From Ophelia neglecta (Eukaryota): DNA of 64,000 nt. Under the pieces are notes generated by a model. That model saw nothing but the letters and a program-made list of their open reading frames with translations. It ran no database searches and was not told where the DNA came from. Location of the stretch: contig OZ260662.1 of assembly GCA_965285935.1 (NCBI GenBank), forward strand, positions 48,298,001-48,362,000, read 5' to 3'. A program made the translations under genes and the position numbers. Below are positions 1,432 to 27,459 of this stretch, piece by piece (position 1 is the stretch's first letter; every line of letters begins with the position of its first letter).

Positions 1432-3869
1432 TTGTATGGCTCCAAAACACTTTATGTTTGTGGATGCTATAGACCCCATACAGGGGACATATCTGGACAC
1501 GAGGCAATTATGAGGTCCATAAGTAGAGCACCTCAGTGCACTAACTCCCATATTTGGATTGCAGGTGACCTAAATTACCCAGGTCTTGACTGGCAGTCCA
1601 ATACAGTTAAATCAGGCTGCAGCTATGCAACCATACATCAAGAATTTCTTGACTTTCTGAGTGATCATAGCTTAGCCCAATTAGTTAGAGAACCAACTAG
1701 AGGACAAAATATACTAGATTTATTCATAACAAACAACCCTACTCTTGTAAATCAAGTATCTGTTGGACCTGGAGTAGCAGACCACAGCAAGGTCCTTGCT
1801 GAAATAAATGTTAAACCCATCACCCTGGAACAGGAAAGAAGGGAAATACCCCTTTACAACAAAACAAACTGGCAGCCCATGAGGAATGACCTACTAAATG
1901 CTCTTAATACTTTAGACACAGAAACTCTCTCAATAGATCAGATATGGACAACACTAAAAAACAACATCGAGACATGTATCAAGAAATATGTACCACACAA
2001 ACTAGCTAGAAAGAAAAACAGTCTACCCTGGCTATCAGCAAATACCAGAAGAATCCTGAAAAAGAAGGATAAACTTCACAGTCGTAAGAAAAAGAGTGGC
2101 AAACCTGAACATATTACTCACTTCAAATCAGTCAGTGCCCTAGCCCAAAAAATGATCAGGCAGGACTACTGGCAATATGTCAAACAGCTGGTGTCTCCCG
2201 CAGAAGGAGAGACCAAACTGGTGAGCACAAAGAAATGTTGGACTTTCATTAAGCACTGTAAAAATGACACTACCGGCGTGGCACCATTAGAGGATGAAAC
2301 TGGTACAGTTCACTCCGATGGCGCCACCAAGGCAAACATACTAAATAGGCAATTTAGTTCTGTATTCTCTAAACCTGCACCACTGAGCCTGAAGCAGAGC
2401 TGTTTGCGAAATACACCTGCACACCTAATTCCAACTAGCATGCAGTCCCCCCATCCTGACCTTATTGACTTCGACATAGGCCTGGAAGGGGTGCATAAAC
2501 TACTACAAAACCTGAGGCCACATAAGGCGGCGGGACCAAATGGACTCAGACCTCTGATCCTCCAACAACTGGGGAGTGTCATTGCTCCCACTCTCCAAAT
2601 TATTTTCCAGAGATCTCTGAGTGAGGGTAAACTGCCTGAGGATTGGTGTCATGCTAATGTTGTTCCCATCTTTAAGAAAGGCCCTAAACATGCACCTGCT
2701 AATTACAGGCCTGTCTCTCTCACATGTATATGCAGCAAATTAATGGAGCATATTATCTCCAGCCAGGTTAGGAAACACCTAGACTCCAATAATATCTTAT
2801 CTCCCTTTCAGCACGGATTTCGCTCTAGGAGATCCTGTGAAACCCAGCTTATCGAATTTGTCCAAGACCTACATACGACCTGTGAAAAAGGTCGATACAC
2901 TGAAGGAATCATCATGGATTTCAGTAAGGCCTTTGATAAGGTCTCACACCACAAATTGCTATTTAAACTAAACTGGTATGGTATTAGAGGCCAGACTCTT
3001 GATTGGATTGGTGACTTTCTGGCAGATAGGAAGCAGCGAGTAGCCCTGGACGGAATTTTCTCGGACACGTGTAGTGTCACTTCAGGCGTCCCACAGGGTT
3101 CGGTCCTTGGACCAATCTTGTTTCTAATATACATTAATGACCTTCCTGACTGTGTATCATCCAATACCCGGCTATTTGCTGATGATACCATAATATACAG
3201 AGAAATTAACACTGTCCAAGACACAATTACCCTACAAAGGGATCTGACTAAACTTGAAAACTGGTCAAACCTTTGGCAAATGGAATTCCACCCTAAAAAA
3301 TGTGCTGTCCTTAAAATTGGCCGGAAAAAGACACAATTCAACTCCACTTACATACTTTACAATCAAGCCCTGGAACAAGTAGACACCGCTAAATACCTCG
3401 GCATTACCCTCTCCTCTGACCTCTCTTGGAACACACACATTAACAATATTTCTAACAAAGCCAGCCAAACACTCGGATTTCTCAAACGGAACTTAAAAAT
3501 TCATTCTCCTGACATTAAAGCTAAAGCCTATATGGGTCTGGTTCGTCCAAAGATGGAGTACGCGGCAGCAGTGTGGGACCCCCATACAGCAAACAATATA
3601 TACAAACTTGAGCAGGTCCAGCGCAGGGCAGCCCGCTGGACACTCAACCGTTTCCACAACACCTCTAGCGTCACCTCCATGTTATGTCAACTGGAGTGGC
3701 CAACCTTACAACAACGTAGATACACAGCCAGACTCACCATGATGTACAAAATGGTGTACAGTACTGTAGGTGTCAACCCCTATCAATATTTACAACCTAT
3801 CTCTAGACCCACTAGATTCTCACATCCTCTAACTTTCCTTCAGCCACATTGTTCAACCACCGCTTATAG
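1432..3869 (+). pseudogene. LINE ORF2 (endonuclease-reverse transcriptase), 5' part
   Basis: Open frame with EN and RT motifs. Removing 3870-27459 rejoins ..TTAY|SMSFFPRT.. in frame. Confidence 0.92.
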
Positions 3870-4323
3870 CACAGGGCCTTTTAAAACTGAAATCTCCCAT
3901 ATATAGTCACTATATACTATATAAAAATAACAAGGGAACAGACTCCTGCATGGAGTCCGACAGGCATCTCTCAGCTTAAAGCCCGATATTTTCAAAAATT
4001 CAACACAATCCTCCACTTTCACTGCACAAATCTGTCCTCAGGTAATAATACTTTCAATAAAACACAATAAATGTCCAGTCAAATCATATAATTTTTCTAT
4101 ACCAAGCCTCAAATGCAGCTTTTTACCCCTATTTTGACAAGGACAACATCTACTGGGCACATCCACCACTCACCAGTTAACAGGTAAACAGCAACTTCAG
4201 CTGCAGTTCCATGGATCATATGTACATTCCTTGCCCTGGCTGTAGGCCCTGGCCCATTACACTCGACTATTTGGGGTTGTCATCCCCTAAATAGCCTTAT
4301 ATTTGCCAAAATGTAACAAAATC
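3870..4323 (+). repeat. Left TIR of outer element (454 bp)
   Basis: Reverse complement of 26998-27451. Confidence 0.93.
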
Positions 4324-4649
4324 GTGACAAAATCATCCTGTTGAGGTTATTTCAATTTGTTTATATCCATCCGCAGCAAATGCATGCTGGACGTAACACC
4401 TGCTGTGATTGGCTGAATAATAATGATTTATTTATCTAGCCATAAACTATGTAAAGTGTTCAAATACATGTATTCAAATAAAAAATGAATGTTTGTTTGT
4501 TTTACTATTTATTTGAATGGTCTTTCTAATATATTTTTGCGTTTGAAGCCTATTTTTCACGTGCGACAATGCTGCCATCTGAAGGGAGACTGGTATGCCG
4601 CGAAATTTGAAATTTTTTCCTATGAAAGTATCACTTTTATAGTTTGAAA

Positions 4650-5103
4650 CACAGGGCCTTTTAAAACTGAAATCTCCCATATATAGTCACTATATACTAT
4701 ATAAAAATAACAAGGGAACAGACTCCTGCATGGAGTCCGACAGGCATCTCTCAGCTTAAAGCCCGATATTTTCAAAAATTCAACACAATCCTCCACTTTC
4801 ACTGCACAAATCTGTCCTCAGGTAATAATACTTTCAATAAAACACAATAAATGTCCAGTCAAATCATATAATTTTTCTATACCAAGCCTCAAATGCAGCT
4901 TTTTACCCCTATTTTGACAAGGACAACATCTACTGGGCACATCCACCACTCACCAGTTAACAGGTAAACAGCAACTTCAGCTGCAGTTCCATGGATCATA
5001 TGTACATTCCTTGCCCTGGCTGTAGGCCCTGGCCCATTACACTCGACTATTTGGGGTTGTCATCCCCTAAATAGCCTTATATTTGCCAAAATGTAACAAA
5101 ATC
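4650..5103 (+). repeat. Left TIR of inner element (454 bp)
   Basis: Reverse complement of 15867-16320 and direct copy of 3870-4323. Confidence 0.93.
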
Positions 5104-5442
5104 GTGACAAAATCATCCTGTTGAGGTTATTTCAATTTGTTTATATCCATCCGCAGCAAATGCATGCTGGACGTAACACCTGCTGTGATTGGCTGAATAA
5201 TAATGATTTATTTATCTAGCCATAAACTATGTAAAGTGTTCAAATACATGTATTCAAATAAAAAATGAATGTTTGTTTGTTTTACTATTTATTTGAATGG
5301 TCTTTCTAATATATTTTTGCGTTTGAAGCCTATTTTTCACGTGCGACAATGCTGCCATCTGAAGGGAGACTGGTATGCCGCGAAATTTGAAATTTTTTCC
5401 TATGAAAGTATCACTTTTATAGTTTGAAAAACCTTTAACACC

Positions 5443-8400
5443 ATGGGAAATGAGAAATGCTTTGCAGCAAATTGGTACGTATCAATACAAATTTTCCTAT
5501 TTATTCTTTTGAGGAATTAAATGGAATTTAATTGGAATAGGCCCACATAGTATCAAAATAAATTGTATAATATTACATTACACTGTAAGGCCCTGTAAAC
5601 CAGACAAAAGATGAAAAGAAAAGCTTAAGCCCCAGGAAATTAATTTTCTGTTAGGGGATACTTTATGGAAAAATTGCTTTTCCCCAATATTAAGAGCTTC
5701 AAAAAAGTAGGATGCTTACCCTACCAAACATTCAATTCAGCACAAAATTAAGATGCTTGCAACTATGTGAATATTAATCAGTATTAATGTAAATAAATAA
5801 TGGGAGGAATATTGCCTCATTTATTCCAATATATATATCCCTATTCTAATAAATGCCTCTCCTCTGCGTCTGATAAATAATGTCTCTCCTGAAATGTCAT
5901 ACAGCCCCAACCCCCCACCCCCCCCCCCCCCCCACCCCCCAAAAAAATTCATAAACTCCCACTTGTGTCATTTTTTCTACTTCCCGAGTTGAATTATTTA
6001 CCACCTTTTGGCATGTTAACCAGGGCTTCTAAATTTTATGCCACAATCAGAGTTGTCTTTTTTTAGTCAGCATTGGGGATTTGAGAGAATTAGCATACAT
6101 TTCACAGCAGGGATTCATATTTGAGATTGGACTCGGCTTCATTAATTGTCTAATGCTTTTAGGAAAAAGAACAATAAAATGAGAACCTTTGAACATAACA
6201 TATTTATATGTACAAATAACAGGGCCCTGTTGTACAACTATAGATGTATTCAGATGTCATATAGCATAATAATGTGCTGTGTATAGCAACCATTCTCTCA
6301 GTAGTTATGTTATTTACTTACAAATAATGTGCATACTGCCTTCAGTGCCTTGGTTACTATCACATTTAATATAATAGGTTAACCCATTAGGCATCAAAAT
6401 AGTTTTTATTGCAATTAAACATATTATTAGTTATTCCAACAAAAGGAAATAACTTCAGATTTCAAGAATGACTTTAACAGGGAGTAATTATCAAAGACAA
6501 TATTTGAATGTTATACATAATATTCATTACATAACACATCTTTTATGATTCAATCTCAATAAAATACTTAATTTTATCTCAAATGAGCTCTCTTACACCA
6601 CACCCCGAGGGGGGGGGCACTCTGTATACTGGGGTTATTACATATGTGCCGCCGTTTCGACCCCCCTTTTTCGACCTATGTAAAATTTCGACCCCCTGTT
6701 TTTTACCTTCATGTAGAATTTCGACCCCTGTTTTTAGCATATGTACAACTTTTGATTGAAATGTAGAATTTCGACCCCTATATTTGGTTGAAATATAGAA
6801 TTTTTCCCCTATATCTGGCTGAAATGTAGAATATCGACCCCTGTTTTCAGCAATTTTTGTAGAGTTTGCGCCTGTGATTCGAAGACTGGGCGACACAATT
6901 GTACCAATTTCCAGACTGAGTGCCCCCCCCCCCCCCCCCCCGGGCACCACACTGTGTAAAGTCGAGATGATCACACTTTCATTGCCAACAATGTGGCATG
7001 AGAGAGTGGCCCTTTAACTCCATAATTGATGAAACAGTTAAATGTAATACTAGTGTTATCACCAATGGTCAAAACAACAAAATTCCCTAATAGCAGTTAT
7101 AAAAGCAACTAGACCAATTACAATTAAATTCTTTTTTATTGCTAGGATTTTGAGGAACACCGCCCCATCTGAAGAGGGCCGACTTAGCAAAGATGAGGTT
7201 TTCTTTGCATATTTTGAGCATGCATCAGCAACAGCTTCAGCACCTGACATCATTGATACTGTTCCATTTGGTAAGCTGTTCCTACGTTTAACAGGAACCA
7301 AGACAGTCAATCAACGTTATGGCAGAACTTTCAAGAAGGTTTATCTTGGTATAACATGGGCATCACCAGAAAGTACCCCTCTACCTGAATTTACAGCAAA
7401 GGAATTCCTCAATATTATACCCTCAAACGTGTCAGTGTGTCAACCATCTGAGGGGCTGATAACTGTTACCTGCTCATTAGACACTAAATGTGATGGAAGA
7501 ACCATACAAAAAGAGGTAAAATTTCACAGGAATGGGTATTGGGAGTTACATGTAGATAGTTTTCCAGTGGAACTTCATCAAATTGGCATTGATAATCATT
7601 TTAATATGACAGACAGAGAGGTGAAGGTAATCTTGTCCCTAGTTGAAAAAATTGATGTTTGTGGGGGCAAGACATGCCCAACATCTGGTGTATTGGTGAA
7701 GACATGCTTGTTACATAAAGTAACATATCCTGATGGACAAAAAAGTAACACAATACAAAGCACCTCTTGCCAAAGGGTCCTATCACTCATTTCCTCTGGC
7801 AAGTCCTGTAATACATGTAGATTAATAAAAGTATATGAACAGAAAAAACATGGGAATGTTCAAAATGTTGATCAGGCAGCTGGCCAAACATTCCAAGATG
7901 TCATTAGGAAATGGATTCCAAACATTTCAGCCAGTGCACTTGAGTTGTTTACCTCCCAAGTCAGCAACACAGGAAATTCTGGTAATCGTTGGAGTGGTTA
8001 CCATGAAACTATTCGTTGGTCCTTGGCCCTCTGGCTCCGTAGTAAGCAAGCGTACGCTGACCTTCGGAGGATGACTGGCTTGCATCTTCCGAGTGAGGAG
8101 ACATTGCGTTTCCACAAAAACAGTGTGTCACATGGTGCAGGTCTCCAGGAGGAAAATATAAAGTGGATGTACCTAGAGGCAAAAAGGCTGAAAGTTCCTC
8201 AAAATGGATGGGAGGGAGGATTACTCATTGATGAGATGTCTATACAGCCCTCTTTGGACTTTCAGCGCGATGGCAAGTTCCTGAAAATTGTAGGCTACAA
8301 CAATCTTGGCGAGACCTGTGATGCCATGGCTACTCTAAGGAGGGGCAGTGATGAGCGTCAACTTGCAGACCATGTTTTGCAAATCTCATTTCAAGGATTA

Positions 8401-9558
8401 ACACACTTCCGCTTTTCAGTTGCCCACTACCCCTCTAACCAAGTGTCATCTGGCCAACTGAATTATTTATTCCATCAGGCAGTGTCACTCCTAAAAAGTT
8501 ATGGCTTCAGGGTCACTTACGTAAGCCTTGATGGGGCACAAGCAAACCGTACATTTGTCAAAATGTCATTTCCAAACAACGATGCCCGGGAAAAGAAAAT
8601 GACCATGGAGTCACCAATTGGAAGTGGTGCCATTACTTTTATCATGGATTTTTCTCATGTGATTAAAAAAATCCGAAATTCCATTGAGAGCAGCCGAGTT
8701 GATGGTAAGCGGCTCCTCACCTTGCCATCAATGAAAACAGTTGAATGGCAGCATTGGCAGAGTGCCTATGATTGGGATAAGGGCAATCCACTTGCCTTAC
8801 ACCGTCATCTAACAGATGAACACATACTGACTTTGTCCAATGCCTCCAAAATGAGGAACCACCTAGCAGAACATGTTTTGAATTCAGACATGTACAACTT
8901 GATGCTCGCCTACCAATCCAGTTTGGGAAGTCATGGTTCACATTTGGATGGTCCTATTGAGCTCCTCAACAACACACGGACCATGATTACAAACTTCCGA
9001 GACACAAGGGCTCTCTGTGAACCTTCCGATCCTAGACTGAAAGAAAACCTCAGTGTTCAACAGTGGTTCAAAAGCTGGGAAGTCTGGGCACTCAATCGCA
9101 CTGACATCTCCCAACAGCAGCGTAAAGCACTCCTGATGACTGAGCAGTGTCGAGAGGATCTAGATTCTTGCTTGTTAGGATTTGATGAACTGTGTCGTCG
9201 GCGAATGTCGGAGGAAACCACCAGTCGGTATTCCATCATACCTGCAAGCATAAACAGTGATGCAATAGAAAACAACTTCTGTCAAGTTCGTGGACTGAAT
9301 GGATCAAATCAAAATCCAACCTATTCACAATACCAAAAGACCATGAACACTGTCACTGTTCTGAGGCCTTTAGTCTCAAAGAAGGGCAATGCAACTGCAG
9401 GCCGTGAGGGAGCAGAAGCTTTAACCTTGAAGAGAGCAGCCTCCCAAACCAGCAAGATTGTCAAAAAGAAGCCCTTTACAGATCTGACTAACTTGTACGT
9501 ACTGTTATCTTATCAATATGTTTTCAAATTTTCACCATATCTCCATATTTATTATTAA
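5443..9558 (+). CDS. P-element-family (THAP9-like core) DDE transposase, inner copy; predicted exons 5443-5474 and 7146-9558, ~814 aa
   Basis: Motifs RW..SKQAYADLR..LPSEETL, IDEM (D), SLDGAQANR (D), DFSHVIKKIRN, KMRNHLA, SDAIENNF (E), NPT. Exon 1 is inferred from accATGG, a TG|gtacgt donor and a ttgctag|G acceptor that match in phase. Confidence 0.9.
6604..6944. mobile_element. Non-autonomous MITE in transposase intron (inner copy)
   Basis: TIR CCCGAG(G)nCACTC / GAGTG(C)nGGG, 8-bp TSD CACCACAC (6596-6603 / 6945-6952), internal repeats of ATGTAGAATTTCGACCCC. Confidence 0.8.
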
Positions 9559-9636
9559 GTTATTAAGAATACTGTAGATAAAATATTTCAGAGTATAAAA
9601 AGTACCTGGTTGTTTTAAAATGTTGTGGCAGTAACA

Positions 9637-11911
9637 TCATAGCAAACACACTGGGCACATAAACTCCTCATCTTCGGACTGGTACTTCTGGTATTCCTCC
9701 ACAGTAAGACCAGAACAGACTCGATGTAACCAACTGAAACATTACCAGTACAAAACATGCAAAAGGATGATATCAGTCACTAAAATGACATGAACATGAT
9801 GCATAAAGCCATACTGGAGTGTAGTCTCCAGACTTTTTTCATACATCGTAGAATATGTTTGTGCAAAATTTTACTTCATCGGTGGAAGAATGTCGTTAGT
9901 AGTTACATTGCAATATTTAAGTAGAAAGATGTTTTCAACATGTAACATATACAATTACAGTAGAACCTTCCTTAAAGACCACCCCTTTATACAGACCACC
10001 TGTCTATTTTGACCACCCACTTTAAGAACAGAAAGTCGGGGTTTCATTGAAAATCAACCTGTCTTAACAGACTGCTTGTCTGGAGAGACCAGCATTTCTC
10101 AGTCCCATTGGTGGTCTTAATAGACAGGTTCCAATGTATATGACAACATCACAGCTTATACATGTACATATCTATAGCAATTTTTAAAAACAATTAACAG
10201 GTCATTGACCATACTTTGGTAGTAACATGATAATTGTGCTCAGCTGCAGCTGGACAGAATATTTAACAAACAAATGAGTAATGTCAGTTAACTTACCCAT
10301 CACACAGGTCACAGCATATCCATTCCTCACCACTCTCTTCTTGCTTCTTGCAGACAAGGCATGCCGGCGGATGTGAAACCTCAGAAACTGGTTCTGCCAC
10401 GACACCATCCAGTATGTGGTGAGCAGAAGCTGAAAGATGATGAAGCTCTTGGTCCTGAGGTGTCTGACTACAGTCTTGGATACCCTGCTCCAAGCTAGGA
10501 AGTAAGTCCTTCTTTGTATTGCTTTTGGGCTTTTTGATGTTGTATGCCTGACACAAGGTTAAAAGGTCATTCTTCAAGAATTTGTTCAACTTCGTTCTAG
10601 ACATTTTTGCCAATTTCAAGTGAATGTCACCTGCAATATTTGCAGCTTTTGTTTCACCAGCATGGCGAGATGCTTTTCTTGGTTTTTTAGAGCCTGTGCC
10701 TGCCACTACTGCTTTCCTATTCCGCTTGGACGGATTCCCTTGAACATGCTGCCCTATTTGAGTTCTGTGTGCCTTTTTTTTGGGAAGAGCACTGAGAATA
10801 TCTCGCCTCCACTGTCTCATCATTGTCCGTGTGAATACCTGAACCATGTCTTCATGCAGTGATGTGATTAAGGGAGAGTCCATGTTTTGGCCTTCAAACA
10901 TAGTATGCACACTCCTTAACACATCTGGGTCTTTCATAATTTCAGAGAAGACTAATCGATGAACATCATCTCCAAATTTAGCAATGTTCTTGCTTCCTAT
11001 CAAGGATAGGAATTTCTCACATATTACCCCAAAATAAGAAAATGCTGTATCAGAGATGTTGGTTAGTCCTTGGGAAATGTTCTGTTTGGCCTTTATTTCC
11101 TGCAAACTCAAGGGGTCATTTGTCTCAGCCTCTATCTGATCAGGTGACTTACACAGAGTTTTCAGAAGAATCATCTTCTGATATGATTCCTCCCAAAGTT
11201 TAAGTTCCTGTGAGGAACAGTTGTACATTTTCCTCCCCAGTCGCAGATTCAGCTGTTTGCGGCACTGATGGATCACATATCCCGAAACATATCGCAGTTT
11301 GCCCCTAACATCAGAGTTATGCATTCTGCCTTTCAAACTGCTAAATCGCCTGGACTCTTTTCCATGCTCCTGTTCTATGTGTTTTTCTGTGCGCACAAGT
11401 GTCACTGCAGTAGAAAGCTTGTACACCATTTTCCAGCATATGTCTTTACACATGTCATCGAGCTTGTCCCCAAAAGTCTCTTTCATCATAGTCTGATATG
11501 TTGATTGGTGAAACATACCTGCAAGCACATACAGAAGTGTTCAAATTCCATTTTAAGCATTTAATTTCATTCATAATAGCAATAATTTATTTCAATGCTT
11601 TTTATTACAGGGCATTCCCACCTGCCTCTCTAAGTAGAATTATATTAGTAAGACTATTGCAATCAGCCTCAATGTTTATATAAATGAAAATTGTAAACAA
11701 CTCCAGATTTTACTTCTTCAACATTAAATAATTAAGTCTCTGGAATGTATGGAATGTATTTGTATTACACAATTGTATATATAAATTTTATGAGTTGACC
11801 CACTGAATGTATACATTCCACAGTTTGGCTTTTGAAACTATACATTCAATGACTAAAATGGCCTATCGGATGTATACATGTACATTCCAATGGATGTAAA
11901 CATTCAATACA

Positions 11912-11958
<47 letters not shown>

Positions 11959-14900
11959 GGAGGATGGCCAACTTTGATTATGGCATAACAAGAGTTATAC
12001 AAGGCCCCTTACCTGCCAGCCACTTCTGATAAGTGGTTTCTTCATTTGGATCTTTCGGAGGTATCCTTGGAATTAATGATTCATGCTTTTCATATATTTT
12101 GGAATACATTTTTGCCACAAATTTGAGGAAGTTATCATCTGCTTTGAGAATTTCAATCTTGGCATTATATGAGACATGGTATTCTGTGACTTCTTCCCTA
12201 TATGTGAAAAGTTCCAGTGAAAGATTGACATCAAAGTCATCAGGAAGAGCCTGTTGAATTGTATTCGAGTTCTCATCGCCAATTTCCTGATCATCATTCT
12301 CTTCCAGAATTAATTGTGCACAAGCTTCAATATCAGCAATATCGTCAATGTCAATGTCAGAGTCCCATTCTACTTCATCATTTAGAGCTTCTGCTTGTGT
12401 TTTCACAGGAAGCGCTGGTGGAGCTAGGTGATGGCAGCATGACTCAGTTACTGGCTGTGATGGGTTATTGGCAACGCCAATATCATCAGGCTGTGGAGGA
12501 ACTATGGCACCTCGAGAGAAGTTCACAAGTCTGAGTCCAGCTGAAGACCTAACACGACCAAGGGCAACTCCCAGCATCCCAGGACTGCCGATTAGCCCAC
12601 AGTGTATCTCAACATTCTCAAGGGTCATACCCTGAGCCTTGTGGATGGTCAAGCCATATGCAAGGTTGAATGGAAACTGCTTCCGGGTGGCTTCATCAAC
12701 TTTTTTTTTTGGATTGTACTCTGAAATAAACAGGAAATGATGTAAAATGTGGCCAAATGTTAACAGTAAGTTAATGTGGTTTCTGCTGTAACACTGCCAT
12801 TAATTGTCAAGAATCATAGGCCTATATGTATGTCAAATCAATTAGAGCATGTTTTATGCTTATTTTTCTAATTAAACTATGTAGTAACATATCCATCATA
12901 AACATGCAAGGTACAAGAGTATAAATTTTACAGGGTAAAATCAGTACAATTGATTGTTTTGTAGCCTCTAAGGCAACCTGAACTTGTAACATTGTTGGGG
13001 TAAATTAAACCAGGCAATGTAATAGGAAAATGCAAATATTGCTAAATGTGAATGTAGTGTGACTGAGCACTGAAGATTTATCTCTTCTCTATTGGTTCAA
13101 TGATTTAAATCAAATTCATTTTCACAATTTAACTACTGAATGAAGCAAATTGGCCACACATCTATGATATCTGAATATCAAAAATTGACAAAATTTCAAC
13201 AAATATCTCATAGTGGGGAAATGTTGCCAATATGTTGTTATCCACTAACCAGAAAATCAGTTTGGTATGGCCTCACCACCCACTTTTCAAATAGAGGATT
13301 ATGCAATTTCTGCCCAGCTTAAACCTATTTCTCCCTGTAGAGCAGAAACTTTGCAACCCTGCACATGCGCATTTTAAAGAAGGCTTACTTCCCGGCTTTT
13401 TTTTATAAGTATGGAATATAGAGAAGATGAATCATTGCACAATGGAAGGAATATGGAATGAAACAAACCTGTGAAAGTGTCTCTTGTGAAATCAGTTGTC
13501 AAGTTGATATCCTCAAAATGGACTTTCAGTATGTCATCATTGAAGTCAACTAGATAGCCCAGTAGTCCATTTACCAGGCGGGGGTCTTTATGCATGTAGT
13601 TCTTTGAAAGGATGAGTGGGCAGCCCCTCCTAATTTGTAGCTGTTCTGGAACTGCCATGGCTTTCAAGAAATCTGGATTACCAGAATCTACAGCAGCATA
13701 GCACTTCTCAGGCCCACCATGCTAAAAAGATGACCATACAGCAATTTATTTAAAATTTATTTTGGGAATTTATTTTCATTAATTTCTTACAAAAAATTAT
13801 AGTGTGGTATGAAATAAGCACAGTTATGTGTGAAGAGCATGAGGGTTCTCACCTTCAACAACATCTCTCGGTTGTGCTTGTTGACCTCGAATTTTCGAGG
13901 GAACAGTTTTACTATTTTCCCATCTGGGACCGGTAATGGCTTGCTGTGAGAGGACAGGAATTGGATCGTTTCCTCTGAGGGCTTTCCTTGTGCAACTTCC
14001 TGCACAGCCTGGATATAAAAAAAGATTGATATGGTGTTTCAGTGTAATGGTAATGACATATGAAAGTCAGAAAAAAACAGGTAGAAAATAGCTGACACCC
14101 CCCCCCCTCTACACACACCCACCCACATACCCTAATACACAGTGGAACACTTTGAGTGATAACTTACAAGGAATGGATATTTTCAGCCTATTCTATGCAC
14201 TTGTATTTTTTTTACTCTATTATTCAATAACTGAAGACAATTTCAATATTTGGATTAGTTTTAATAGGCTCGGAATTAATTCACCAGCTTTACTGATATT
14301 GCTTTCATACCTAATTTACTATTTATTGAAGATACACAATCTAGAAAATGGACACTGCAAAAAAACCCTCAATGACAGTGTTTGAGAATTAAATCTGTTT
14401 TATATTGCCTTTTCAATTCATATTTATTAAATGCTTACATTTATCAGCAATGTTTCTTCCTGTCGAAGAACTTGCTGAAGCACAATGGTGTGTTGTACAG
14501 CGGCTGTCCATGCTGGTGACTTGTAGCAGGGCTCCCCAGGGTCATTGTACAGCACATTACGGACAGGCCGAAGTTGTAGGAAGTCACCTACAAAGATGAC
14601 CTGCAACCCTCCAAATGCTTCTTCAGTCTGAAAGTTAGAAAGTCAATCATTATATCAACACATTGACAAATAAAAACACAAGGGTATAGGCCTGCCTTTA
14701 GCCACACGTGGAAAGGGATGTTTTAATGAATCATTCACGTGATGGGCACAATATAAAGCTTATGCCTGAAAACTTTTAAATTTGTCTTGTAGATTAGCTA
14801 GACCTACCTTGCGCACCTTCCGGCAAATGTATTCTATTTGCTTAAGTAGTCGGGCACTTAACATAGAAATTTCATCAATGATGAGGGTATTAGTGTCCTC

Positions 14901-15678
14901 AAGCCTCCTTTTGGCACCTTCTTTTCTTTGATCAGAACATATGAGATGAAGTGCTTCCTCATCTTCATAGCGCCCATCTTGTATCCCTGCCCATCTAGCA
15001 AAACATGATTAAATTCATTATAATAACAGACATTAGAATTTATTTTCGATATCGCATTGATTTCTGAGGTAAAGGGCCTTTTTTAGAGGCCTTTTATTTA
15101 TAGGGAACAAAAACAAAGCAGCAAAAATGGTGCCAGTTGGCCCGAAAGAAAAAAAGGGCCTCGGAATCAGTTGCCAAAAGAGAGGGTTTCATCGATGAGG
15201 AGACTTTGCAAATGGGGTTAACTCAGACTCTCATGATGTAAAAATGGGTTTCTTGGAGATATATAGGGGAAATATTGGAAATGGGGTCTAGAGAGAGAGA
15301 GAGAGAGGGGGGGGGTACCTACTACGGCCGATATAGGGAGCCCCCCCCCCCCCCCCCCCCCCGTGTGGCACAGACTTCTCAAATATCGGTAGTAATAATT
15401 TATTTTGGACAAGAAGCATTTTCATCATAAATAACAGTTGTTACAAGTGCTTACCTGTGGATTGTTTGCGCTTTGCACCTCAGCTGAGCACTGGCCGATC
15501 CGGTGGTGCAGGTCACAGCAACAACTTGGTTAGCCACATGGTTAAGCTCATTGAAAATATGTCTCACTGTCTGGGATTTCCCAGTTCCTGCCTGGCCAAG
15601 CAGGCAGAAACTGTGTCCTTTCAAAGCCAGATGTAAGGCCCTTTGCTGTTCCTCCGTCAAAAGCATGACAGATGACAT
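9637..15678 (-). CDS. Pif1-family helicase / PHD-finger multidomain protein, inner copy; exons 15678-15455, 14994-14808, 14627-14439, 14008-13853, 13721-13469, 12720-12013, 11518-10297, 9733-9637 (~1011 aa)
   Basis: Walker A GQAGTGKS, TIHRWAGI, LIIDEISML, FGGLQVIFVGDFLQLRPV, RQ, LVNG, RKQFPFNLAYGLTIHKAQGMTL, VALGRVR. C-terminal PHD CLVC..WICCDLCDGWLHRVC..FMCPVC. All introns are GT-AG with consistent phases. Confidence 0.9.
9958..10136. mobile_element. pogo/Tigger-like (Tc1/mariner superfamily) MITE in helicase intron 7
   Basis: TA flanks and imperfect TIR CAGTAGAACC..AAGACCACC / GGTGGTCTT..GGTTCCAATG. Confidence 0.65.
11912..11958. repeat. (CA)n(TA)n microsatellite (also at ~22804-22850)
   Basis: Seen directly. 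Confidence 0.9.
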
Positions 15679-15734
15679 TTAAACAGAATGAAACACTTTT
15701 AACACGACTGACTACACCATGTGCGTTTATGTTT

Positions 15735-15775
15735 ATCCTTTAAATAGCCCTCTACAGCTCCCAGCCAATCACAGG
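15735..15775 (-). promoter_or_regulatory. Putative promoter of the helicase gene (TATTTAA box and CCAAT box)
   Basis: Minus-strand CTATTTAAAGG ~60 bp upstream of ATG 15678 and AGCCAATCA at ~15763-15771. A mirrored TGATTGGCT lies at ~5186 upstream of the transposase. Confidence 0.45.
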
Positions 15776-15866
15776 CCTCCTTACATTCTGACTCCTCACT
15801 TGGCCTTTACTGCTGGGTAGCTTTCAAAATGGTGGCTGAAGCAGCAGAATTTGAAGTCAGCAGGAT

Positions 15867-16320
15867 GATTTTGTTACATTTTGGCAAATATAAGGCTATT
15901 TAGGGGATGACAACCCCAAATAGTCGAGTGTAATGGGCCAGGGCCTACAGCCAGGGCAAGGAATGTACATATGATCCATGGAACTGCAGCTGAAGTTGCT
16001 GTTTACCTGTTAACTGGTGAGTGGTGGATGTGCCCAGTAGATGTTGTCCTTGTCAAAATAGGGGTAAAAAGCTGCATTTGAGGCTTGGTATAGAAAAATT
16101 ATATGATTTGACTGGACATTTATTGTGTTTTATTGAAAGTATTATTACCTGAGGACAGATTTGTGCAGTGAAAGTGGAGGATTGTGTTGAATTTTTGAAA
16201 ATATCGGGCTTTAAGCTGAGAGATGCCTGTCGGACTCCATGCAGGAGTCTGTTCCCTTGTTATTTTTATATAGTATATAGTGACTATATATGGGAGATTT
16301 CAGTTTTAAAAGGCCCTGTG
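15867..16320 (-). repeat. Right TIR of inner element
   Basis: Inverted copy of 4650-5103. Confidence 0.93.
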
Positions 16321-16341
16321 GTTTGAAAAACCTTTAACACC

Positions 16342-19300
16342 ATGGGAAATGAGAAATGCTTTGCAGCAAATTGGTACGTATCAATACAAATTTTCCTATT
16401 TATTCTTTTGAGGAATTAAATGGAATTTAATTGGAATAGGCCCACATAGTATCAAAATAAATTGTATAATATTACATTACACTGTAAGGCCCTGTAAACC
16501 AGACAAAAGATGAAAAGAAAAGCTTAAGCCCCAGGAAATTAATTTTCTGTTAGGGGATACTTTATGGAAAAATTGCTTTTCCCCAATATTAAGAGCTTCA
16601 AAAAAGTAGGATGCTTACCCTACCAAACATTCAATTCAGCACAAAATTAAGATGCTTGCAACTATGTGAATATTAATCAGTATTAATGTAAATAAATAAT
16701 GGGAGGAATATTGCCTCATTTATTCCAATATATATATCCCTATTCTAATAAATGCCTCTCCTCTGCGTCTGATAAATAATGTCTCTCCTGAAATGTCATA
16801 CAGCCCCAACCCCCCACCCCCCCCCCCCACCCCCCAAAAAAATTCATAAACTCCCACTTGTGTCATTTTTTCTACTTCCCGAGTTGAATTATTTACCACC
16901 TTTTGGCATGTTAACCAGGGCTTCTAAATTTTATGCCACAATCAGAGTTGTCTTTTTTTAGTCAGCATTGGGGATTTGAGAGAATTAGCATACATTTCAC
17001 AGCAGGGATTCATATTTGAGATTGGACTCGGCTTCATTAATTGTCTAATGCTTTTAGGAAAAAGAACAATAAAATGAGAACCTTTGAACATAACATATTT
17101 ATATGTACAAATAACAGGGCCCTGTTGTACAACTATAGATGTATTCAGATGTCATATAGCATAATAATGTGCTGTGTATAGCAACCATTCTCTCAGTAGT
17201 TATGTTATTTACTTACAAATAATGTGCATACTGCCTTCAGTGCCTTGGTTACTATCACATTTAATATAATAGGTTAACCCATTAGGCATCAAAATAGTTT
17301 TTATTGCAATTAAACATATTATTAGTTATTCCAACAAAAGGAAATAACTTCAGATTTCAAGAATGACTTTAACAGGGAGTAATTATCAAAGACAATATTT
17401 GAATGTTATACATAATATTCATTACATAACACATCTTTTATGATTCAATCTCAATAAAATACTTAATTTTATCTCAAATGAGCTCTCTTACACCACACCC
17501 CGAGGGGGGGGGCACTCTGTATACTGGGGTTATTACATATGTGCCGCCGTTTCGACCCCCCTTTTTCGACCTATGTAGAATTTCGACCCCCTGTTTTTTA
17601 CCTTCATGTAGAATTTCGACCCCTGTTTTTAGCATATGTACAACTTTTGATTGAAATGTAGAATTTCGACCCCTATATTTGGTTGAAATATAGAATTTTT
17701 CCCCTATATCTGGCTGAAATGTAGAATATCGACCCCTGTTTTCAGCAATTTTTGTAGAGTTTGCGCCTGTGATTCGAAGACTGGGCGACACAATTGTACC
17801 AATTTCCAGACTGAGTGCCCCCCCCCCCCCCCCGGGCACCACACTGTGTAAAGTCGAGATGATCACACTTTCATTGCCAACAATGTGGCATGAGAGAGTG
17901 GCCCTTTAACTCCATAATTGATGAAACAGTTAAATGTAATACTAGTGTTATCACCAATGGTCAAAACAACAAAATTCCCTAATAGCAGTTATAAAAGCAA
18001 CTAGACCAATTACAATTAAATTCTTTTTTATTGCTAGGATTTTGAGGAACACCGCCCCATCTGAAGAGGGCCGACTTAGCAAAGATGAGGTTTTCTTTGC
18101 ATATTTTGAGCATGCATCAGCAACAGCTTCAGCACCTGACATCATTGATACTGTTCCATTTGGTAAGCTGTTCCTACGTTTAACAGGAACCAAGACAGTC
18201 AATCAACGTTATGGCAGAACTTTCAAGAAGGTTTATCTTGGTATAACATGGGCATCACCAGAAAGTACCCCTCTACCTGAATTTACAGCAAAGGAATTCC
18301 TCAATATTATACCCTCAAACGTGTCAGTGTGTCAACCATCTGAGGGGCTGATAACTGTTACCTGCTCATTAGACACTAAATGTGATGGAAGAACCATACA
18401 AAAAGAGGTAAAATTTCACAGGAATGGGTATTGGGAGTTACATGTAGATAGTTTTCCAGTGGAACTTCATCAAATTGGCATTGATAATCATTTTAATATG
18501 ACAGACAGAGAGGTGAAGGTAATCTTGTCCCTAGTTGAAAAAATTGATGTTTGTGGGGGCAAGACATGCCCAACATCTGGTGTATTGGTGAAGACATGCT
18601 TGTTACATAAAGTAACATATCCTGATGGACAAAAAAGTAACACAATACAAAGCACCTCTTGCCAAAGGGTCCTATCACTCATTTCCTCTGGCAAGTCCTG
18701 TAATACATGTAGATTAATAAAAGTATATGAACAGAAAAAACATGGGAATGTTCAAAATGTTGATCAGGCAGCTGGCCAAACATTCCAAGATGTCATTAGG
18801 AAATGGATTCCAAACATTTCAGCCAGTGCACTTGAGTTGTTTACCTCCCAAGTCAGCAACACAGGAAATTCTGGTAATCGTTGGAGTGGTTACCATGAAA
18901 CTATTCGTTGGTCCTTGGCCCTCTGGCTCCGTAGTAAGCAAGCGTACGCTGACCTTCGGAGGATGACTGGCTTGCATCTTCCGAGTGAGGAGACATTGCG
19001 TTTCCACAAAAACAGTGTGTCACATGGTGCAGGTCTCCAGGAGGAAAATATAAAGTGGATGTACCTAGAGGCAAAAAGGCTGAAAGTTCCTCAAAATGGA
19101 TGGGAGGGAGGATTACTCATTGATGAGATGTCTATACAGCCCTCTTTGGACTTTCAGCGCGATGGCAAGTTCCTGAAAATTGTAGGCTACAACAATCTTG
19201 GCGAGACCTGTGATGCCATGGCTACTCTAAGGAGGGGCAGTGATGAGCGTCAACTTGCAGACCATGTTTTGCAAATCTCATTTCAAGGATTAACACACTT

Positions 19301-20450
19301 CCGCTTTTCAGTTGCCCACTACCCCTCTAACCAAGTGTCATCTGGCCAACTGAATTATTTATTCCATCAGGCAGTGTCACTCCTAAAAAGTTATGGCTTC
19401 AGGGTCACTTACGTAAGCCTTGATGGGGCACAAGCAAACCGTACATTTGTCAAAATGTCATTTCCAAACAACGATGCCCGGGAAAAGAAAATGACCATGG
19501 AGTCACCAATTGGAAGTGGTGCCATTACTTTTATCATGGATTTTTCTCATGTGATTAAAAAAATCCGAAATTCCATTGAGAGCAGCCGAGTTGATGGTAA
19601 GCGGCTCCTCACCTTGCCATCAATGAAAACAGTTGAATGGCAGCATTGGCAGAGTGCCTATGATTGGGATAAGGGCAATCCACTTGCCTTACACCGTCAT
19701 CTAACAGATGAACACATACTGACTTTGTCCAATGCCTCCAAAATGAGGAACCACCTAGCAGAACATGTTTTGAATTCAGACATGTACAACTTGATGCTCG
19801 CCTACCAATCCAGTTTGGGAAGTCATGGTTCACATTTGGATGGTCCTATTGAGCTCCTCAACAACACACGGACCATGATTACAAACTTCCGAGACACAAG
19901 GGCTCTCTGTGAACCTTCCGATCCTAGACTGAAAGAAAACCTCAGTGTTCAACAGTGGTTCAAAAGCTGGGAAGTCTGGGCACTCAATCGCACTGACATC
20001 TCCCAACAGCAGCGTAAAGCACTCCTGATGACTGAGCAGTGTCGAGAGGATCTAGATTCTTGCTTGTTAGGATTTGATGAACTGTGTCGTCGGCGAATGT
20101 CGGAGGAAACCACCAGTCGGTATTCCATCATACCTGCAAGCATAAACAGTGATGCAATAGAAAACAACTTCTGTCAAGTTCGTGGACTGAATGGATCAAA
20201 TCAAAATCCAACCTATTCACAATACCAAAAGACCATGAACACTGTCACTGTTCTGAGGCCTTTAGTCTCAAAGAAGGGCAATGCAACTGCAGGCCGTGAG
20301 GGAGCAGAAGCTTTAACCTTGAAGAGAGCAGCCTCCCAAACCAGCAAGATTGTCAAAAAGAAGCCCTTTACAGATCTGACTAACTTGTACGTACTGTTAT
20401 CTTATCAATATGTTTTCAAATTTTCACCATATCTCCATATTTATTATTAA
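16342..20450 (+). CDS. P-element-family transposase, outer copy; predicted exons 16342-16373 and 18038-20450
   Basis: The ORF-track protein is identical to the inner copy. Confidence 0.9.
17499..17836. mobile_element. MITE in transposase intron (outer copy)
   Basis: Same TIRs and CACCACAC TSD as 6604-6944. Confidence 0.8.
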
Positions 20451-20528
20451 GTTATTAAGAATACTGTAGATAAAATATTTCAGAGTATAAAAAGTACCTG
20501 GTTGTTTTAAAATGTTGTGGCAGTAACA

Positions 20529-22803
20529 TCATAGCAAACACACTGGGCACATAAACTCCTCATCTTCGGACTGGTACTTCTGGTATTCCTCCACAGTAAG
20601 ACCAGAACAGACTCGATGTAACCAACTGAAACATTACCAGTACAAAACATGCAAAAGGATGATATCAGTCACTAAAATGACATGAACATGATGCATAAAG
20701 CCATACTGGAGTGTAGTCTCCAGACTTTTTTCATACATCGTAGAATATGTTTGTGCAAAATTTTACTTCATCGGTGGAAGAATGTCGTTAGTAGTTACAT
20801 TGCAATATTTAAGTAGAAAGATGTTTTCAACATGTAACATATACAATTACAGTAGAACCTTCCTTAAAGACCACCCCTTTATACAGACCACCTGTCTATT
20901 TTGACCACCCACTTTAAGAACAGAAAGTCGGGGTTTCATTGAAAATCAACCTGTCTTAACAGACTGCTTGTCTGGAGAGACCAGCATTTCTCAGTCCCAT
21001 TGGTGGTCTTAATAGACAGGTTCCAATGTATATGACAACATCACAGCTTATACATGTACATATCTATAGCAATTTTTAAAAACAATTAACAGGTCATTGA
21101 CCATACTTTGGTAGTAACATGATAATTGTGCTCAGCTGCAGCTGGACAGAATATTTAACAAACAAATGAGTAATGTCAGTTAACTTACCCATCACACAGG
21201 TCACAGCATATCCATTCCTCACCACTCTCTTCTTGCTTCTTGCAGACAAGGCATGCCGGCGGATGTGAAACCTCAGAAACTGGTTCTGCCACGACACCAT
21301 CCAGTATGTGGTGAGCAGAAGCTGAAAGATGATGAAGCTCTTGGTCCTGAGGTGTCTGACTACAGTCTTGGATACCCTGCTCCAAGCTAGGAAGTAAGTC
21401 CTTCTTTGTATTGCTTTTGGGCTTTTTGATGTTGTATGCCTGACACAAGGTTAAAAGGTCATTCTTCAAGAATTTGTTCAACTTCGTTCTAGACATTTTT
21501 GCCAATTTCAAGTGAATGTCACCTGCAATATTTGCAGCTTTTGTTTCACCAGCATGGCGAGATGCTTTTCTTGGTTTTTTAGAGCCTGTGCCTGCCACTA
21601 CTGCTTTCCTATTCCGCTTGGACGGATTCCCTTGAACATGCTGCCCTATTTGAGTTCTGTGTGCCTTTTTTTTGGGAAGAGCACTGAGAATATCTCGCCT
21701 CCACTGTCTCATCATTGTCCGTGTGAATACCTGAACCATGTCTTCATGCAGTGATGTGATTAAGGGAGAGTCCATGTTTTGGCCTTCAAACATAGTATGC
21801 ACACTCCTTAACACATCTGGGTCTTTCATAATTTCAGAGAAGACTAATCGATGAACATCATCTCCAAATTTAGCAATGTTCTTGCTTCCTATCAAGGATA
21901 GGAATTTCTCACATATTACCCCAAAATAAGAAAATGCTGTATCAGAGATGTTGGTTAGTCCTTGGGAAATGTTCTGTTTGGCCTTTATTTCCTGCAAACT
22001 CAAGGGGTCATTTGTCTCAGCCTCTATCTGATCAGGTGACTTACACAGAGTTTTCAGAAGAATCATCTTCTGATATGATTCCTCCCAAAGTTTAAGTTCC
22101 TGTGAGGAACAGTTGTACATTTTCCTCCCCAGTCGCAGATTCAGCTGTTTGCGGCACTGATGGATCACATATCCCGAAACATATCGCAGTTTGCCCCTAA
22201 CATCAGAGTTATGCATTCTGCCTTTCAAACTGCTAAATCGCCTGGACTCTTTTCCATGCTCCTGTTCTATGTGTTTTTCTGTGCGCACAAGTGTCACTGC
22301 AGTAGAAAGCTTGTACACCATTTTCCAGCATATGTCTTTACACATGTCATCGAGCTTGTCCCCAAAAGTCTCTTTCATCATAGTCTGATATGTTGATTGG
22401 TGAAACATACCTGCAAGCACATACAGAAGTGTTCAAATTCCATTTTAAGCATTTAATTTCATTCATAATAGCAATAATTTATTTCAATGCTTTTTATTAC
22501 AGGGCATTCCCACCTGCCTCTCTAAGTAGAATTATATTAGTAAGACTATTGCAATCAGCCTCAATGTTTATATAAATGAAAATTGTAAACAACTCCAGAT
22601 TTTACTTCTTCAACATTAAATAATTAAGTCTCTGGAATGTATGGAATGTATTTGTATTACACAATTGTATATATAAATTTTATGAGTTGACCCACTGAAT
22701 GTATACATTCCACAGTTTGGCTTTTGAAACTATACATTCAATGACTAAAATGGCCTATCGGATGTATACATGTACATTCCAATGGATGTAAACATTCAAT
22801 ACA

Positions 22804-22850
<47 letters not shown>

Positions 22851-25800
22851 GGAGGATGGCCAACTTTGATTATGGCATAACAAGAGTTATACAAGGCCCC
22901 TTACCTGCCAGCCACTTCTGATAAGTGGTTTCTTCATTTGGATCTTTCGGAGGTATCCTTGGAATTAATGATTCATGCTTTTCATATATTTTGGAATACA
23001 TTTTTGCCACAAATTTGAGGAAGTTATCATCTGCTTTGAGAATTTCAATCTTGGCATTATATGAGACATGGTATTCTGTGACTTCTTCCCTATATGTGAA
23101 AAGTTCCAGTGAAAGATTGACATCAAAGTCATCAGGAAGAGCCTGTTGAATTGTATTCGAGTTCTCATCGCCAATTTCCTGATCATCATTCTCTTCCAGA
23201 ATTAATTGTGCACAAGCTTCAATATCAGCAATATCGTCAATGTCAATGTCAGAGTCCCATTCTACTTCATCATTTAGAGCTTCTGCTTGTGTTTTCACAG
23301 GAAGCGCTGGTGGAGCTAGGTGATGGCAGCATGACTCAGTTACTGGCTGTGATGGGTTATTGGCAACGCCAATATCATCAGGCTGTGGAGGAACTATGGC
23401 ACCTCGAGAGAAGTTCACAAGTCTGAGTCCAGCTGAAGACCTAACACGACCAAGGGCAACTCCCAGCATCCCAGGACTGCCGATTAGCCCACAGTGTATC
23501 TCAACATTCTCAAGGGTCATACCCTGAGCCTTGTGGATGGTCAAGCCATATGCAAGGTTGAATGGAAACTGCTTCCGGGTGGCTTCATCAACTTTTTTTT
23601 TTGGATTGTACTCTGAAATAAACAGGAAATGATGTAAAATGTGGCCAAATGTTAACAGTAAGTTAATGTGGTTTCTGCTGTAACACTGCCATTAATTGTC
23701 AAGAATCATAGGCCTATATGTATGTCAAATCAATTAGAGCATGTTTTATGCTTATTTTTCTAATTAAACTATGTAGTAACATATCCATCATAAACATGCA
23801 AGGTACAAGAGTATAAATTTTACAGGGTAAAATCAGTACAATTGATTGTTTTGTAGCCTCTAAGGCAACCTGAACTTGTAACATTGTTGGGGTAAATTAA
23901 ACCAGGCAATGTAATAGGAAAATGCAAATATTGCTAAATGTGAATGTAGTGTGAAACTTTGCTGACACTAAATGGCTATGTGACATTATTCTGTCAAGAG
24001 GAGGGTTGCACCTGCAGTAACCCCCTAATATTCTGCCAATAGTCACATTAAAATATGCCTCTGTTTAGGCCTCTTCACATAGACTATCTGTTTCATTTTT
24101 AAAATGTTGGTTATATAGTGACTATATATGGGAGATTTCAGTTTTAAAAGGCCCTGTGGTTTCACTCACTGCAACCTTTAACAGAACTGAGGATGACTGA
24201 GCACTGAAGATTTATCTCTTCTCTATTGGTTCAATGATTTAAATCAAATTCATTTTCACAATTTAACTACTGAATGAAGCAAATTGGCCACACATCTATG
24301 ATATCTGAATATCAAAAATTGACAAAATTTCAACAAATATCTCATAGTGGGGAAATGTTGCCAATATGTTGTTATCCACTAACCAGAAAATCAGTTTGGT
24401 ATGGCCTCACCACCCACTTTTCAAATAGAGGATTATGCAATTTCTGCCCAGCTTAAACCTATTTCTCCCTGTAGAGCAGAAACTTTGCAACCCTGCACAT
24501 GCGCATTTTAAAGAAGGCTTACTTCCCGGCTTTTTTTTATAAGTATGGAATATAGAGAAGATGAATCATTGCACAATGGAAGGAATATGGAATGAAACAA
24601 ACCTGTGAAAGTGTCTCTTGTGAAATCAGTTGTCAAGTTGATATCCTCAAAATGGACTTTCAGTATGTCATCATTGAAGTCAACTAGATAGCCCAGTAGT
24701 CCATTTACCAGGCGGGGGTCTTTATGCATGTAGTTCTTTGAAAGGATGAGTGGGCAGCCCCTCCTAATTTGTAGCTGTTCTGGAACTGCCATGGCTTTCA
24801 AGAAATCTGGATTACCAGAATCTACAGCAGCATAGCACTTCTCAGGCCCACCATGCTAAAAAGATGACCATACAGCAATTTATTTAAAATTTATTTTGGG
24901 AATTTATTTTCATTAATTTCTTACAAAAAATTATAGTGTGGTATGAAATAAGCACAGTTATGTGTGAAGAGCATGAGGGTTCTCACCTTCAACAACATCT
25001 CTCGGTTGTGCTTGTTGACCTCGAATTTTCGAGGGAACAGTTTTACTATTTTCCCATCTGGGACCGGTAATGGCTTGCTGTGAGAGGACAGGAATTGGAT
25101 CGTTTCCTCTGAGGGCTTTCCTTGTGCAACTTCCTGCACAGCCTGGATATAAAAAAAGATTGATATGGTGTTTCAGTGTAATGGTAATGACATATGAAAG
25201 TCAGAAAAAAACAGGTAGAAAATAGCTGACACCCCCCCCCCCCCTCTACACACACCCACCCACATACCCTAATACACAGTGGAACACTTTGAGTGATAAC
25301 TTACAAGGAATGGATATTTTCAGCCTATTCTATGCACTTGTATTTTTTTTACTCTATTATTCAATAACTGAAGACAATTTCAATATTTGGATTAGTTTTA
25401 ATAGGCTCGGAATTAATTCACCAGCTTTACTGATATTGCTTTCATACCTAATTTACTATTTATTGAAGATACACAATCTAGAAAATGGAAACTGCAAAAA
25501 AACCCTCAATGACAGTGTTTGAGAATTAAATCTGTTTTATATTGCCTTTTCAATTCATATTTATTAAATGCTTACATTTATCAGCAATGTTTCTTCCTGT
25601 CGAAGAACTTGCTGAAGCACAATGGTGTGTTGTACAGCGGCTGTCCATGCTGGTGACTTGTAGCAGGGCTCCCCAGGGTCATTGTACAGCACATTACGGA
25701 CAGGCCGAAGTTGTAGGAAGTCACCTACAAAGATGACCTGCAACCCTCCAAATGCTTCTTCAGTCTGAAAGTTAGAAAGTCAATCATTATATTAACACAT

Positions 25801-26809
25801 TGACAAATAAAAACACAAGGGTATAGGCCTGCCTTTAGCCACACGTGGAAAGGGATGTTTTAATGAATCATTCACGTGATGGGCACAATATAAAGCTTAT
25901 GCCTGAAAACTTTTAAATTTGTCTTGTAGATTAGCTAGACCTACCTTGCGCACCTTCCGGCAAATGTATTCTATTTGCTTAAGTAGTCGGGCACTTAACA
26001 TAGAAATTTCATCAATGATGAGGGTATTAGTGTCCTCAAGCCTCCTTTTGGCACCTTCTTTTCTTTGATCAGAACATATGAGATGAAGTGCTTCCTCATC
26101 TTCATAGCGCCCATCTTGTATCCCTGCCCATCTAGCAAAACATGATTAAATTCATTATAATAACAGACATTAGAATTTATTTTCGATATCGCATTGATTT
26201 CTGAGGTAAAGGGCCTTTTTTAGAGGCCTTTTATTTATAGGGAACAAAAACAAAGCAGCAAAAATGGTGCCAGTTGGCCCGAAAGAAAAAAAGGGCCTCG
26301 GAATCAGTTGCCAAAAGAGAGGGTTTCATCGATGAGGAGACTTTGCAAATGGGGTTAACTCAGACTCTCATGATGTAAAAATGGGTTTCTTGGAGATATA
26401 TAGGGGAAATATTGGAAATGGGGTCTAGAGAGAGAGAGAGAGAGGGGGGGGGGTACCTACTACGGCCGATATAGGGAGCCCCCCCCCCCCCCCGTGTGGC
26501 ACAGACTTCTCAAATATCGGTAGTAATAATTTATTTTGGACAAGAAGCATTTTCATCATAAATAGCAGTTGTTACAAGTGCTTACCTGTGGATTGTTTGC
26601 GCTTTGCACCTCAGCTGAGCACTGGCCGATCCGGTGGTGCAGGTCACAGCAACAACTTGGTTAGCCACATGGTTAAGCTCATTGAAAATATGTCTCACTG
26701 TCTGGGATTTCCCAGTTCCTGCCTGGCCAAGCAGGCAGAAACTGTGTCCTTTCAAAGCCAGATGTAAGGCCCTTTGCTGTTCCTCCGTCAAAAGCATGAC
26801 AGATGACAT
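20529..26809 (-). CDS. Pif1-family helicase / PHD-finger multidomain protein, outer copy (8 exons)
   Basis: Exon translations in the ORF track match the inner copy. Confidence 0.9.
20850..21028. mobile_element. pogo/Tigger-like MITE (outer copy)
   Basis: Copy of 9958-10136. Confidence 0.65.
24112..24158 (-). repeat. Isolated 47-bp copy of the element's right terminus inside helicase intron 5
   Basis: TATATAGTGACTATATATGGGAGATTTCAGTTTTAAAAGGCCCTGTG is identical to the last 47 bp of the element. Confidence 0.9.
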
Positions 26810-27451: not shown

Positions 27452-27459
27452 GCTTATAG

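Follow-up and report, generated by a model that had tools for sequence, protein, structure and literature searches.

A P-type transposon in Ophelia neglecta encodes a transposase without its usual C-terminal domain and a helicase gene carrying a predicted counterpart of that domain

Overview

A recently active P-type transposon in the genome of Ophelia neglecta encodes a transposase that lacks its usual C-terminal domain (CTD), while a homolog of that domain is encoded in the neighboring, convergent gene, fused to a Pif1-like helicase and a PHD finger; the two proteins therefore probably work as one machine, although this last step is inferred. The element was examined in a 64,000-nucleotide stretch of contig OZ260662.1 (assembly GCA_965285935.1, positions 48,298,001 to 48,362,000; hereafter the window), and all coordinates below are those of the window. 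The original prediction, that the CTD is supplied in trans as part of a Pif1 protein, is supported as far as computation allows: its sequence features are all present, the structural and profile similarity to the P transposase CTD exists, and no sign was found that the transposase carries or splices to a CTD of its own. Its further claim, that the two proteins are obligate partners, remains inference.

Structure and activity of the element

Self-BLAST and direct reading of the junctions show a complete 11,671-bp copy (4650-16320, + strand) inserted into a second copy (3870-4649 plus 16321-27451). The insertion site of the inner copy is GTTTGAAA, duplicated at 4642-4649 and 16321-16328, and the outer copy is flanked by the 8-bp duplication GCTTATAG at 3862-3869 and 27452-27459. 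The ends are 454-bp terminal inverted repeats (TIRs) beginning CACAGGG. The left repeat of the outer copy lies at 3870-4323 (+), with the same repeat at 4650-5103 for the inner copy, and shows a 100% inverted match to the right repeats of the inner (15867-16320, -) and outer (26998-27451, -) copies. The copies are 99.6-100% identical. Additionally, the end repeat has at least 524 candidate copies in the genome at about 90% identity, several of which lie as inverted pairs about 1.1 kb across, that is, as non-autonomous derivatives. Eight-base duplications are the signature of the P superfamily, and the machinery encoded here has evidently worked in this genome.

A P-like transposase without a C-terminal domain

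The transposase ORF (7150-9558, +; outer copy at 18042-20450, +) comprises 802 codons between stops and matches the Pfam TNP-like RNaseH_N (PF21787, 8.5e-14) and RNaseH_C (PF21789, 1.6e-4) families, but no C-terminal domain (PF12596). It contains NQNPT at residue 720 and stops 83 residues later. All 76 relatives found are about 780 aa and likewise lack PF12596; these come from the bivalves Tegillarca, Mercenaria, Mytilus, and Pinctada, from Porites corals, and from many metagenome contigs. In the family alignment (43 relatives), D361/E362, D461, and E707...NP are invariant, the cysteines C171/C207/C220/C223 are conserved, and the sequences end at the same place. Pfam reports no THAP domain in the 802-codon ORF, though the first ATG is at codon 153 and the true start, or a possible 5' exon, is unresolved.

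That unresolved 5' end makes it conceivable that the transposase acquires a CTD by splicing to an unrecognized exon, and no RNA data are available for the locus. This reading appears very improbable. Neither the helicase-type domain profile nor a CTD profile (both described below) finds any other ORF of 40 aa or more in any frame of the window, the 76 relatives predicted in other assemblies end at the same place, and the helicase stop codon (9637-9639) lies 79 bp beyond the transposase stop, on the opposite strand.

A helicase gene carrying a CTD-like domain

The convergent gene lies on the - strand, where tblastn with full-length relatives maps eight exons. Exon 1 (15454-15666) contains the P-loop and matches Pfam PIF1 (2.9e-6) and AAA_19 (1.7e-8); exon 2 (14811-15008) and exon 3 (14436-14651) match PIF1 at 2.3e-4 and 1.5e-6, respectively; exon 4 (13844-14014) is supported by tblastn only; and exon 5 (13500-13721) corresponds to the 2B-domain region, with relatives carrying Pif1_2B_dom. 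Exon 6 (~12013-12745; ORF 11978-12652) encodes the helicase C-terminal motifs (HKAQGMTL...GMLGVALGR), directly followed by the acidic run EVEWDSDIDIDDIADIE...EENDDQEIGDENSN, with the donor following ...QKWLA. Exon 7 (10297-11518; acceptor TTGCAG/GT, donor GG/GTAAGT) encodes the CTD-like domain, a lysine-rich stretch, a SAP-like motif, and the first half of the PHD finger. Exon 8 (9637-9733) encodes the second half (WLHRVC...CPVC) and the stop codon. This gene model rests on homology, as the exons were searched separately rather than joined as one protein; however, two proteins from unrelated assemblies (P0001 and P0002) carry the helicase end, acidic run, CTD-like domain, and PHD start in one uninterrupted ORF, and the exon 6-exon 7 join is therefore real. 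Read across the exon 7/8 splice, the PHD finger shows the Cys4-His-Cys3 pattern C-x2-C-x9-CC-x2-C-x4-H-x2-C-x19-C-x2-C; Pfam matches are sub-threshold on each half (exon 8 matches PHD positions 21-47 at E 0.0085), but PHD is over threshold in 26 of 38 long relatives.

The open frame containing exon 7 (10293-11528) reads ...GKLRYVSGYVIHQCRKQL...KAKQNISQGLTNISDTAFSYFGVICEKF...VQVFTRTMMRQWRRDILSALPKKKAHRTQI..., with LRYVSGYVI at 11297-11271, ISQGLTNISD at 11078-11049, and a basic helix FTRTMMRQWRRD...KKKAHRTQI at 10835-10755. The CTD-like domain itself spans 10755-11336 (about 193 aa; eight helices, ending in the basic helix). The corresponding frame of the outer copy (21188-22432, with the domain at 21647-22228, -) is 100% identical. 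Word-index protein searches found only two close relatives of the domain, but an exhaustive search shows a large family, with 940 cluster representatives at E<=1e-3 and 547 at E<=1e-10. Of 38 long members, 26 carry Pif1_2B and PHD, 14 carry PIF1, and none carries a P transposase core or a Rep family domain. Named members are "uncharacterized" or "PIF1-like" proteins of Pecten, Argopecten, Ptychodera, and Glandiceps.

Predicted fold of the CTD-like domain

Two structural models of the domain were compared with 48,161 representative solved chains. The first, from a 7-sequence alignment (pLDDT 72.6), and the second, an AlphaFold model of window positions 10758-11336 from a 51-sequence alignment (pLDDT 92.9, pTM 0.88), each returned chain 6p5a_B as the only hit with Z>=8. 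The aligned region is the CTD of Drosophila P element transposase (residues 617-734), with Z 10.5 and 11.0, rmsd 2.7 and 2.6 Å, respectively, and 118 of 118 residues aligned in both; the next hit scored 7.5. The domain shares the layout of the Drosophila CTD, with an acidic linker, an all-helical fold, and a terminal basic helix.

It is possible that this resemblance is convergent, and that exon 7 encodes a generic helical bundle of the Pif1-PHD helicase family that is unrelated to P transposases and merely adjacent to one within the same transposon. Sequence identity to the Drosophila CTD is only 12-14%; Foldseek against PDB and an ESM Atlas shape search did not recover the match, giving only spurious hits with TM about 0.2-0.4; and the notes of the structural aligner warn that helical domains can reach Z of about 13 by chance. 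Pfam PF12596 does not match the exon 7 ORF at E<=1. However, this model is narrow: a canonical THAP9-like transposase (below) has no PF12596 hit at E<=0.1, and the CTDs fused to transposases in this genome reach only E 0.018-0.044. Direct sequence searches against solved structures, using the single ORF, the 7-sequence profile, the Family A profiles (below), and a canonical THAP9-like CTD, found no P transposase, but because even the canonical CTD fails, these results are uninformative. An ESM feature search pointed to DUF6589 at 0.94, though with a low shared-feature count, and Pfam gives no DUF6589 hit. Considering that the one outstanding chain is exactly the domain predicted beforehand and is fully covered in two models, together with the profile evidence below, convergence appears highly unlikely.

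Sequence homology to P transposase C-terminal domains

The sequence link to P transposases runs through other elements of the same genome. PF12596 picked out four ORFs, which proved to be convergent second genes of other P-like elements, here termed Family A (loci L019, L020, L021, L023, and L024). Each Family A element has a transposase of 780-850 aa with RNaseH_N, GBD, and RNaseH_C but no CTD, and an opposite-strand ORF (ORF2) of about 340 aa reading ...VLYYISGY...RGGLxIPSDxFFL...LRGFA...KxKALRKxLK. ORF2 proteins reach PF12596 at E 4e-4 to 2e-3, better than the canonical cis CTDs of the same genome; a word-index search found one relative of ORF2. A 131-sequence profile of the helicase-type domain matches ORF2 proteins at 96-97.6% probability and E 2e-9 to 5e-12 (best match 97.6%, E 4.6e-12, over 179 columns), collinear through three motifs (xRYxxGY; GLxxxSDxxF; basic KKxAxRK helix). 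Shallower hhalign comparisons had been non-significant or marginal (E 4e-4 in one case).

The ORF2 profile in turn matches canonical, fused CTDs at 97.9%, E 5.9e-13. These include the C-terminus of L043, an 893-aa metagenomic ORF with THAP, HTH, RNaseH_N, GBD, and RNaseH_C all far above Pfam thresholds, and the last exons of the cis-type P loci L045 and L046 of this genome. The direct comparison of the helicase-type profile with the few canonical CTDs is weak (E 0.003), though collinear, and the sequence link is therefore transitive. Nevertheless, a profile built only from ORF2-type and canonical CTDs, run on all ORFs of 40 aa or more in six frames of the window and three foreign contigs, hits only exon 7 (E 3.1e-7, both copies) and its counterparts in L029 and L028, two loci from other organisms.

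Pairing of transposases and CTD-bearing genes

Across this genome, PF21787 identifies 24 transposase loci. The 15 with long ORFs each have a CTD-like gene 2-3 kb away on the opposite strand, of which ten are standalone and five helicase-fused, counting the two window copies. The four best-scoring, multi-exon loci carry the CTD on the same strand, and the remaining five are fragments. The helicase pairing also recurs in bivalve and metagenome contigs. In L028, L029, and L051 (the last from the Tegillarca granosa chromosome), the CTD-like and PHD coding regions are convergent to the transposase. In L048 and L049, the CTD-like ORF is on the opposite strand on the 5' side with a Pif1 ORF on the 3' side, such that the transposase lies between the helicase ORF and the CTD/PHD ORF, as if nested in an intron. 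In L050, only a Pif1 2B fragment is seen. The consistent presence of a CTD in cis or in a partner gene at the long loci of this genome is what one expects if the CTD is needed and can act from a separate chain.

Discussion

These data are best explained by an autonomous P-superfamily cut-and-paste transposon of about 11.7 kb whose transposase is split between two convergent genes, a reading we consider probable but not secure. One gene encodes the DNA-binding and catalytic RNase H-like core; the other encodes a compact Pif1-family helicase, an acidic linker, a homolog of the P element CTD, a basic/SAP-like stretch, and a PHD finger. The P element CTD is tethered by a disordered linker and packs against another subunit (PMC7776569). 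By inference, the CTD-like domain may dock between the RNase H and insertion domains of the transposase dimer, as the Drosophila CTD does in trans between subunits, and complete the DNA-binding surface with its basic terminal helix, which would recruit the helicase and PHD finger into the transpososome. The helicase may handle the long inverted ends or the single-stranded 3' overhangs typical of P-type cleavage, and the PHD finger may guide it to chromatin. A complex prediction for transposase residues 300-760 with domain residues 60-252 returned no answer (score 0.00), and is evidence neither for nor against binding.

Alternatively, the domain may be a genuine CTD homolog that serves the helicase protein's own role, for example as a DNA- or chromatin-binding module, a regulator, or a repressor of transposition, with the transposase core active without any CTD. 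Truncated P proteins act as repressors in Drosophila (PMC7776569), the CTD-like domain of Family A sits in a standalone protein with an unexplained N-terminal half, and there is no evidence of interaction. However, the CTD-less long transposase loci of this genome keep a CTD-bearing partner while cis-CTD loci have none, and the pairing is retained across at least three diverged families and several phyla. In the solved complex the CTD contributes many transposon and target DNA contacts (PMC7776569), and its loss without replacement should be costly. We therefore regard this alternative as unlikely, though it is the strongest of those considered.

A broader hypothesis, which we judge only slightly more likely than not, is that a widespread clade of animal P-superfamily transposons uses a two-subunit transposase, and that in one large branch (at least 940 protein clusters; bivalves, hemichordates, corals) the detached domain is the docking handle that brings a Pif1 helicase and a PHD chromatin reader into the transpososome. 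This would be the first eukaryotic cut-and-paste transposase with an obligate helicase subunit. P element and THAP9 transposases are textbook single-polypeptide enzymes, and the role of their CTD is known only from one cryo-EM structure; a natural, recently active system delivering that domain in trans would give a genetic handle on CTD function, show that eukaryotic DDE transposases can be multi-subunit machines with a motor partner, explain hundreds of unannotated "PIF1-like / uncharacterized" genes in marine invertebrate genomes, and could offer a transposon tool controlled through a separate subunit. Full-text literature searches, which did not extend to Repbase reports, found no description of this arrangement.

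Like Drosophila P element transposase and human and zebrafish THAP9, the system has an RNase H-like DDE core with an insertion domain between beta5 and alpha4, 8-bp target-site duplications and TIRs, and an acidic linker followed by an all-helical CTD ending in a basic helix. Here, however, the linker and CTD are on a second polypeptide encoded on the opposite strand, the TIRs are 454 bp rather than 31 bp, and the element also carries a helicase and a PHD finger. Family A elements share the CTD-less transposase and a convergent partner whose C-terminal half is a CTD homolog with the same three motifs, but that partner lacks helicase, SAP-like motif, and PHD finger, and the transposases have a Pfam-detectable GTP-binding insertion domain. 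By analogy only, bacterial IS21 (IstA/IstB), Mu (MuA/MuB), and Tn7 (TnsB/TnsC) also pair a DDE transposase with a separately encoded nucleotide-hydrolysing partner that engages DNA; there is no homology, the partner here is a Pif1 (SF1B) helicase rather than an AAA+ protein, and the proposed docking module is a piece of the transposase itself. Helitrons and Helentrons likewise carry a Pif1-family helicase within a eukaryotic DNA transposon, but no Rep/HUH domain was found here, full-length relatives begin directly with the helicase P-loop, and the element has TIRs, 8-bp duplications, and a DDE transposase, which Helitrons lack.

Genomic context of the nested element copies

The two element copies within 3862-27459 of the window are not a tandem duplication; rather, one complete copy (4650-16320) is inserted into another, 772 bp from its left end, and each copy has its own 8-bp target-site duplication (GTTTGAAA for the inner copy and GCTTATAG for the outer). 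A LINE-type ORF at 1432-3906, containing endonuclease and reverse transcriptase regions (RVT_1, 2e-36), ends where the outer element begins, so the transposon inserted into or next to a LINE copy. Genome-wide, the 454-bp end repeat has at least 524 candidate copies at about 90% identity; several of these form inverted pairs about 1.1 kb across (e.g., C12:43756016-43757089, C1:37487786-37488860, and C12:17053054-17054130, where C1 and C12 denote contigs of this genome assembly), which look like non-autonomous foldback/MITE-like derivatives of this family.

Variation in gene architecture

Notably, the transposase open frame has no ATG before codon 153 (window 7150-7608), although the first 150 codons are conserved in relatives; a short 5' exon or a non-ATG start is likely. 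A language-model feature search placed the CTD-like domain (residues 40-270 of the 10293-11528 ORF, - strand) nearest to fungal DUF6589 clusters (score 0.94), though with a low shared-feature count.

A second kind of split P element was observed in the same genome at loci L019, L020, L021, L023, and L024 (contigs C1, C5, C2, and C9). These elements combine a CTD-less transposase, containing a Pfam-detectable GTP-binding insertion domain, with a convergent standalone ORF of ~340 aa; while the C-terminal half of this ORF is CTD-like, the N-terminal half has no known family. In two foreign contigs (L048:1966-10012 and L049:535-8406), the transposase gene lies between the Pif1 ORF and the CTD/PHD ORF of the opposite strand. 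The transposase gene may be nested in an intron of the helicase gene; alternatively, the helicase and the CTD-PHD protein may be separate genes in these contigs.

Other coding features of the window

Further LINE ORFs lie at 37294-40751. Three consecutive + strand ORFs are found at 48746-53049, one with a weak reverse-transcriptase hit and one with a tyrosine-recombinase (Phage_integrase) hit, which suggests a DIRS-like retroelement. Additionally, three diverged (68-82%) copies of - strand exons of a Cys-loop ligand-gated ion channel (Neur_chan_LBD and Neur_chan_memb) occur at 32453-33658, 42105-43131, and 57756-59033, apparently representing a small tandem gene family.
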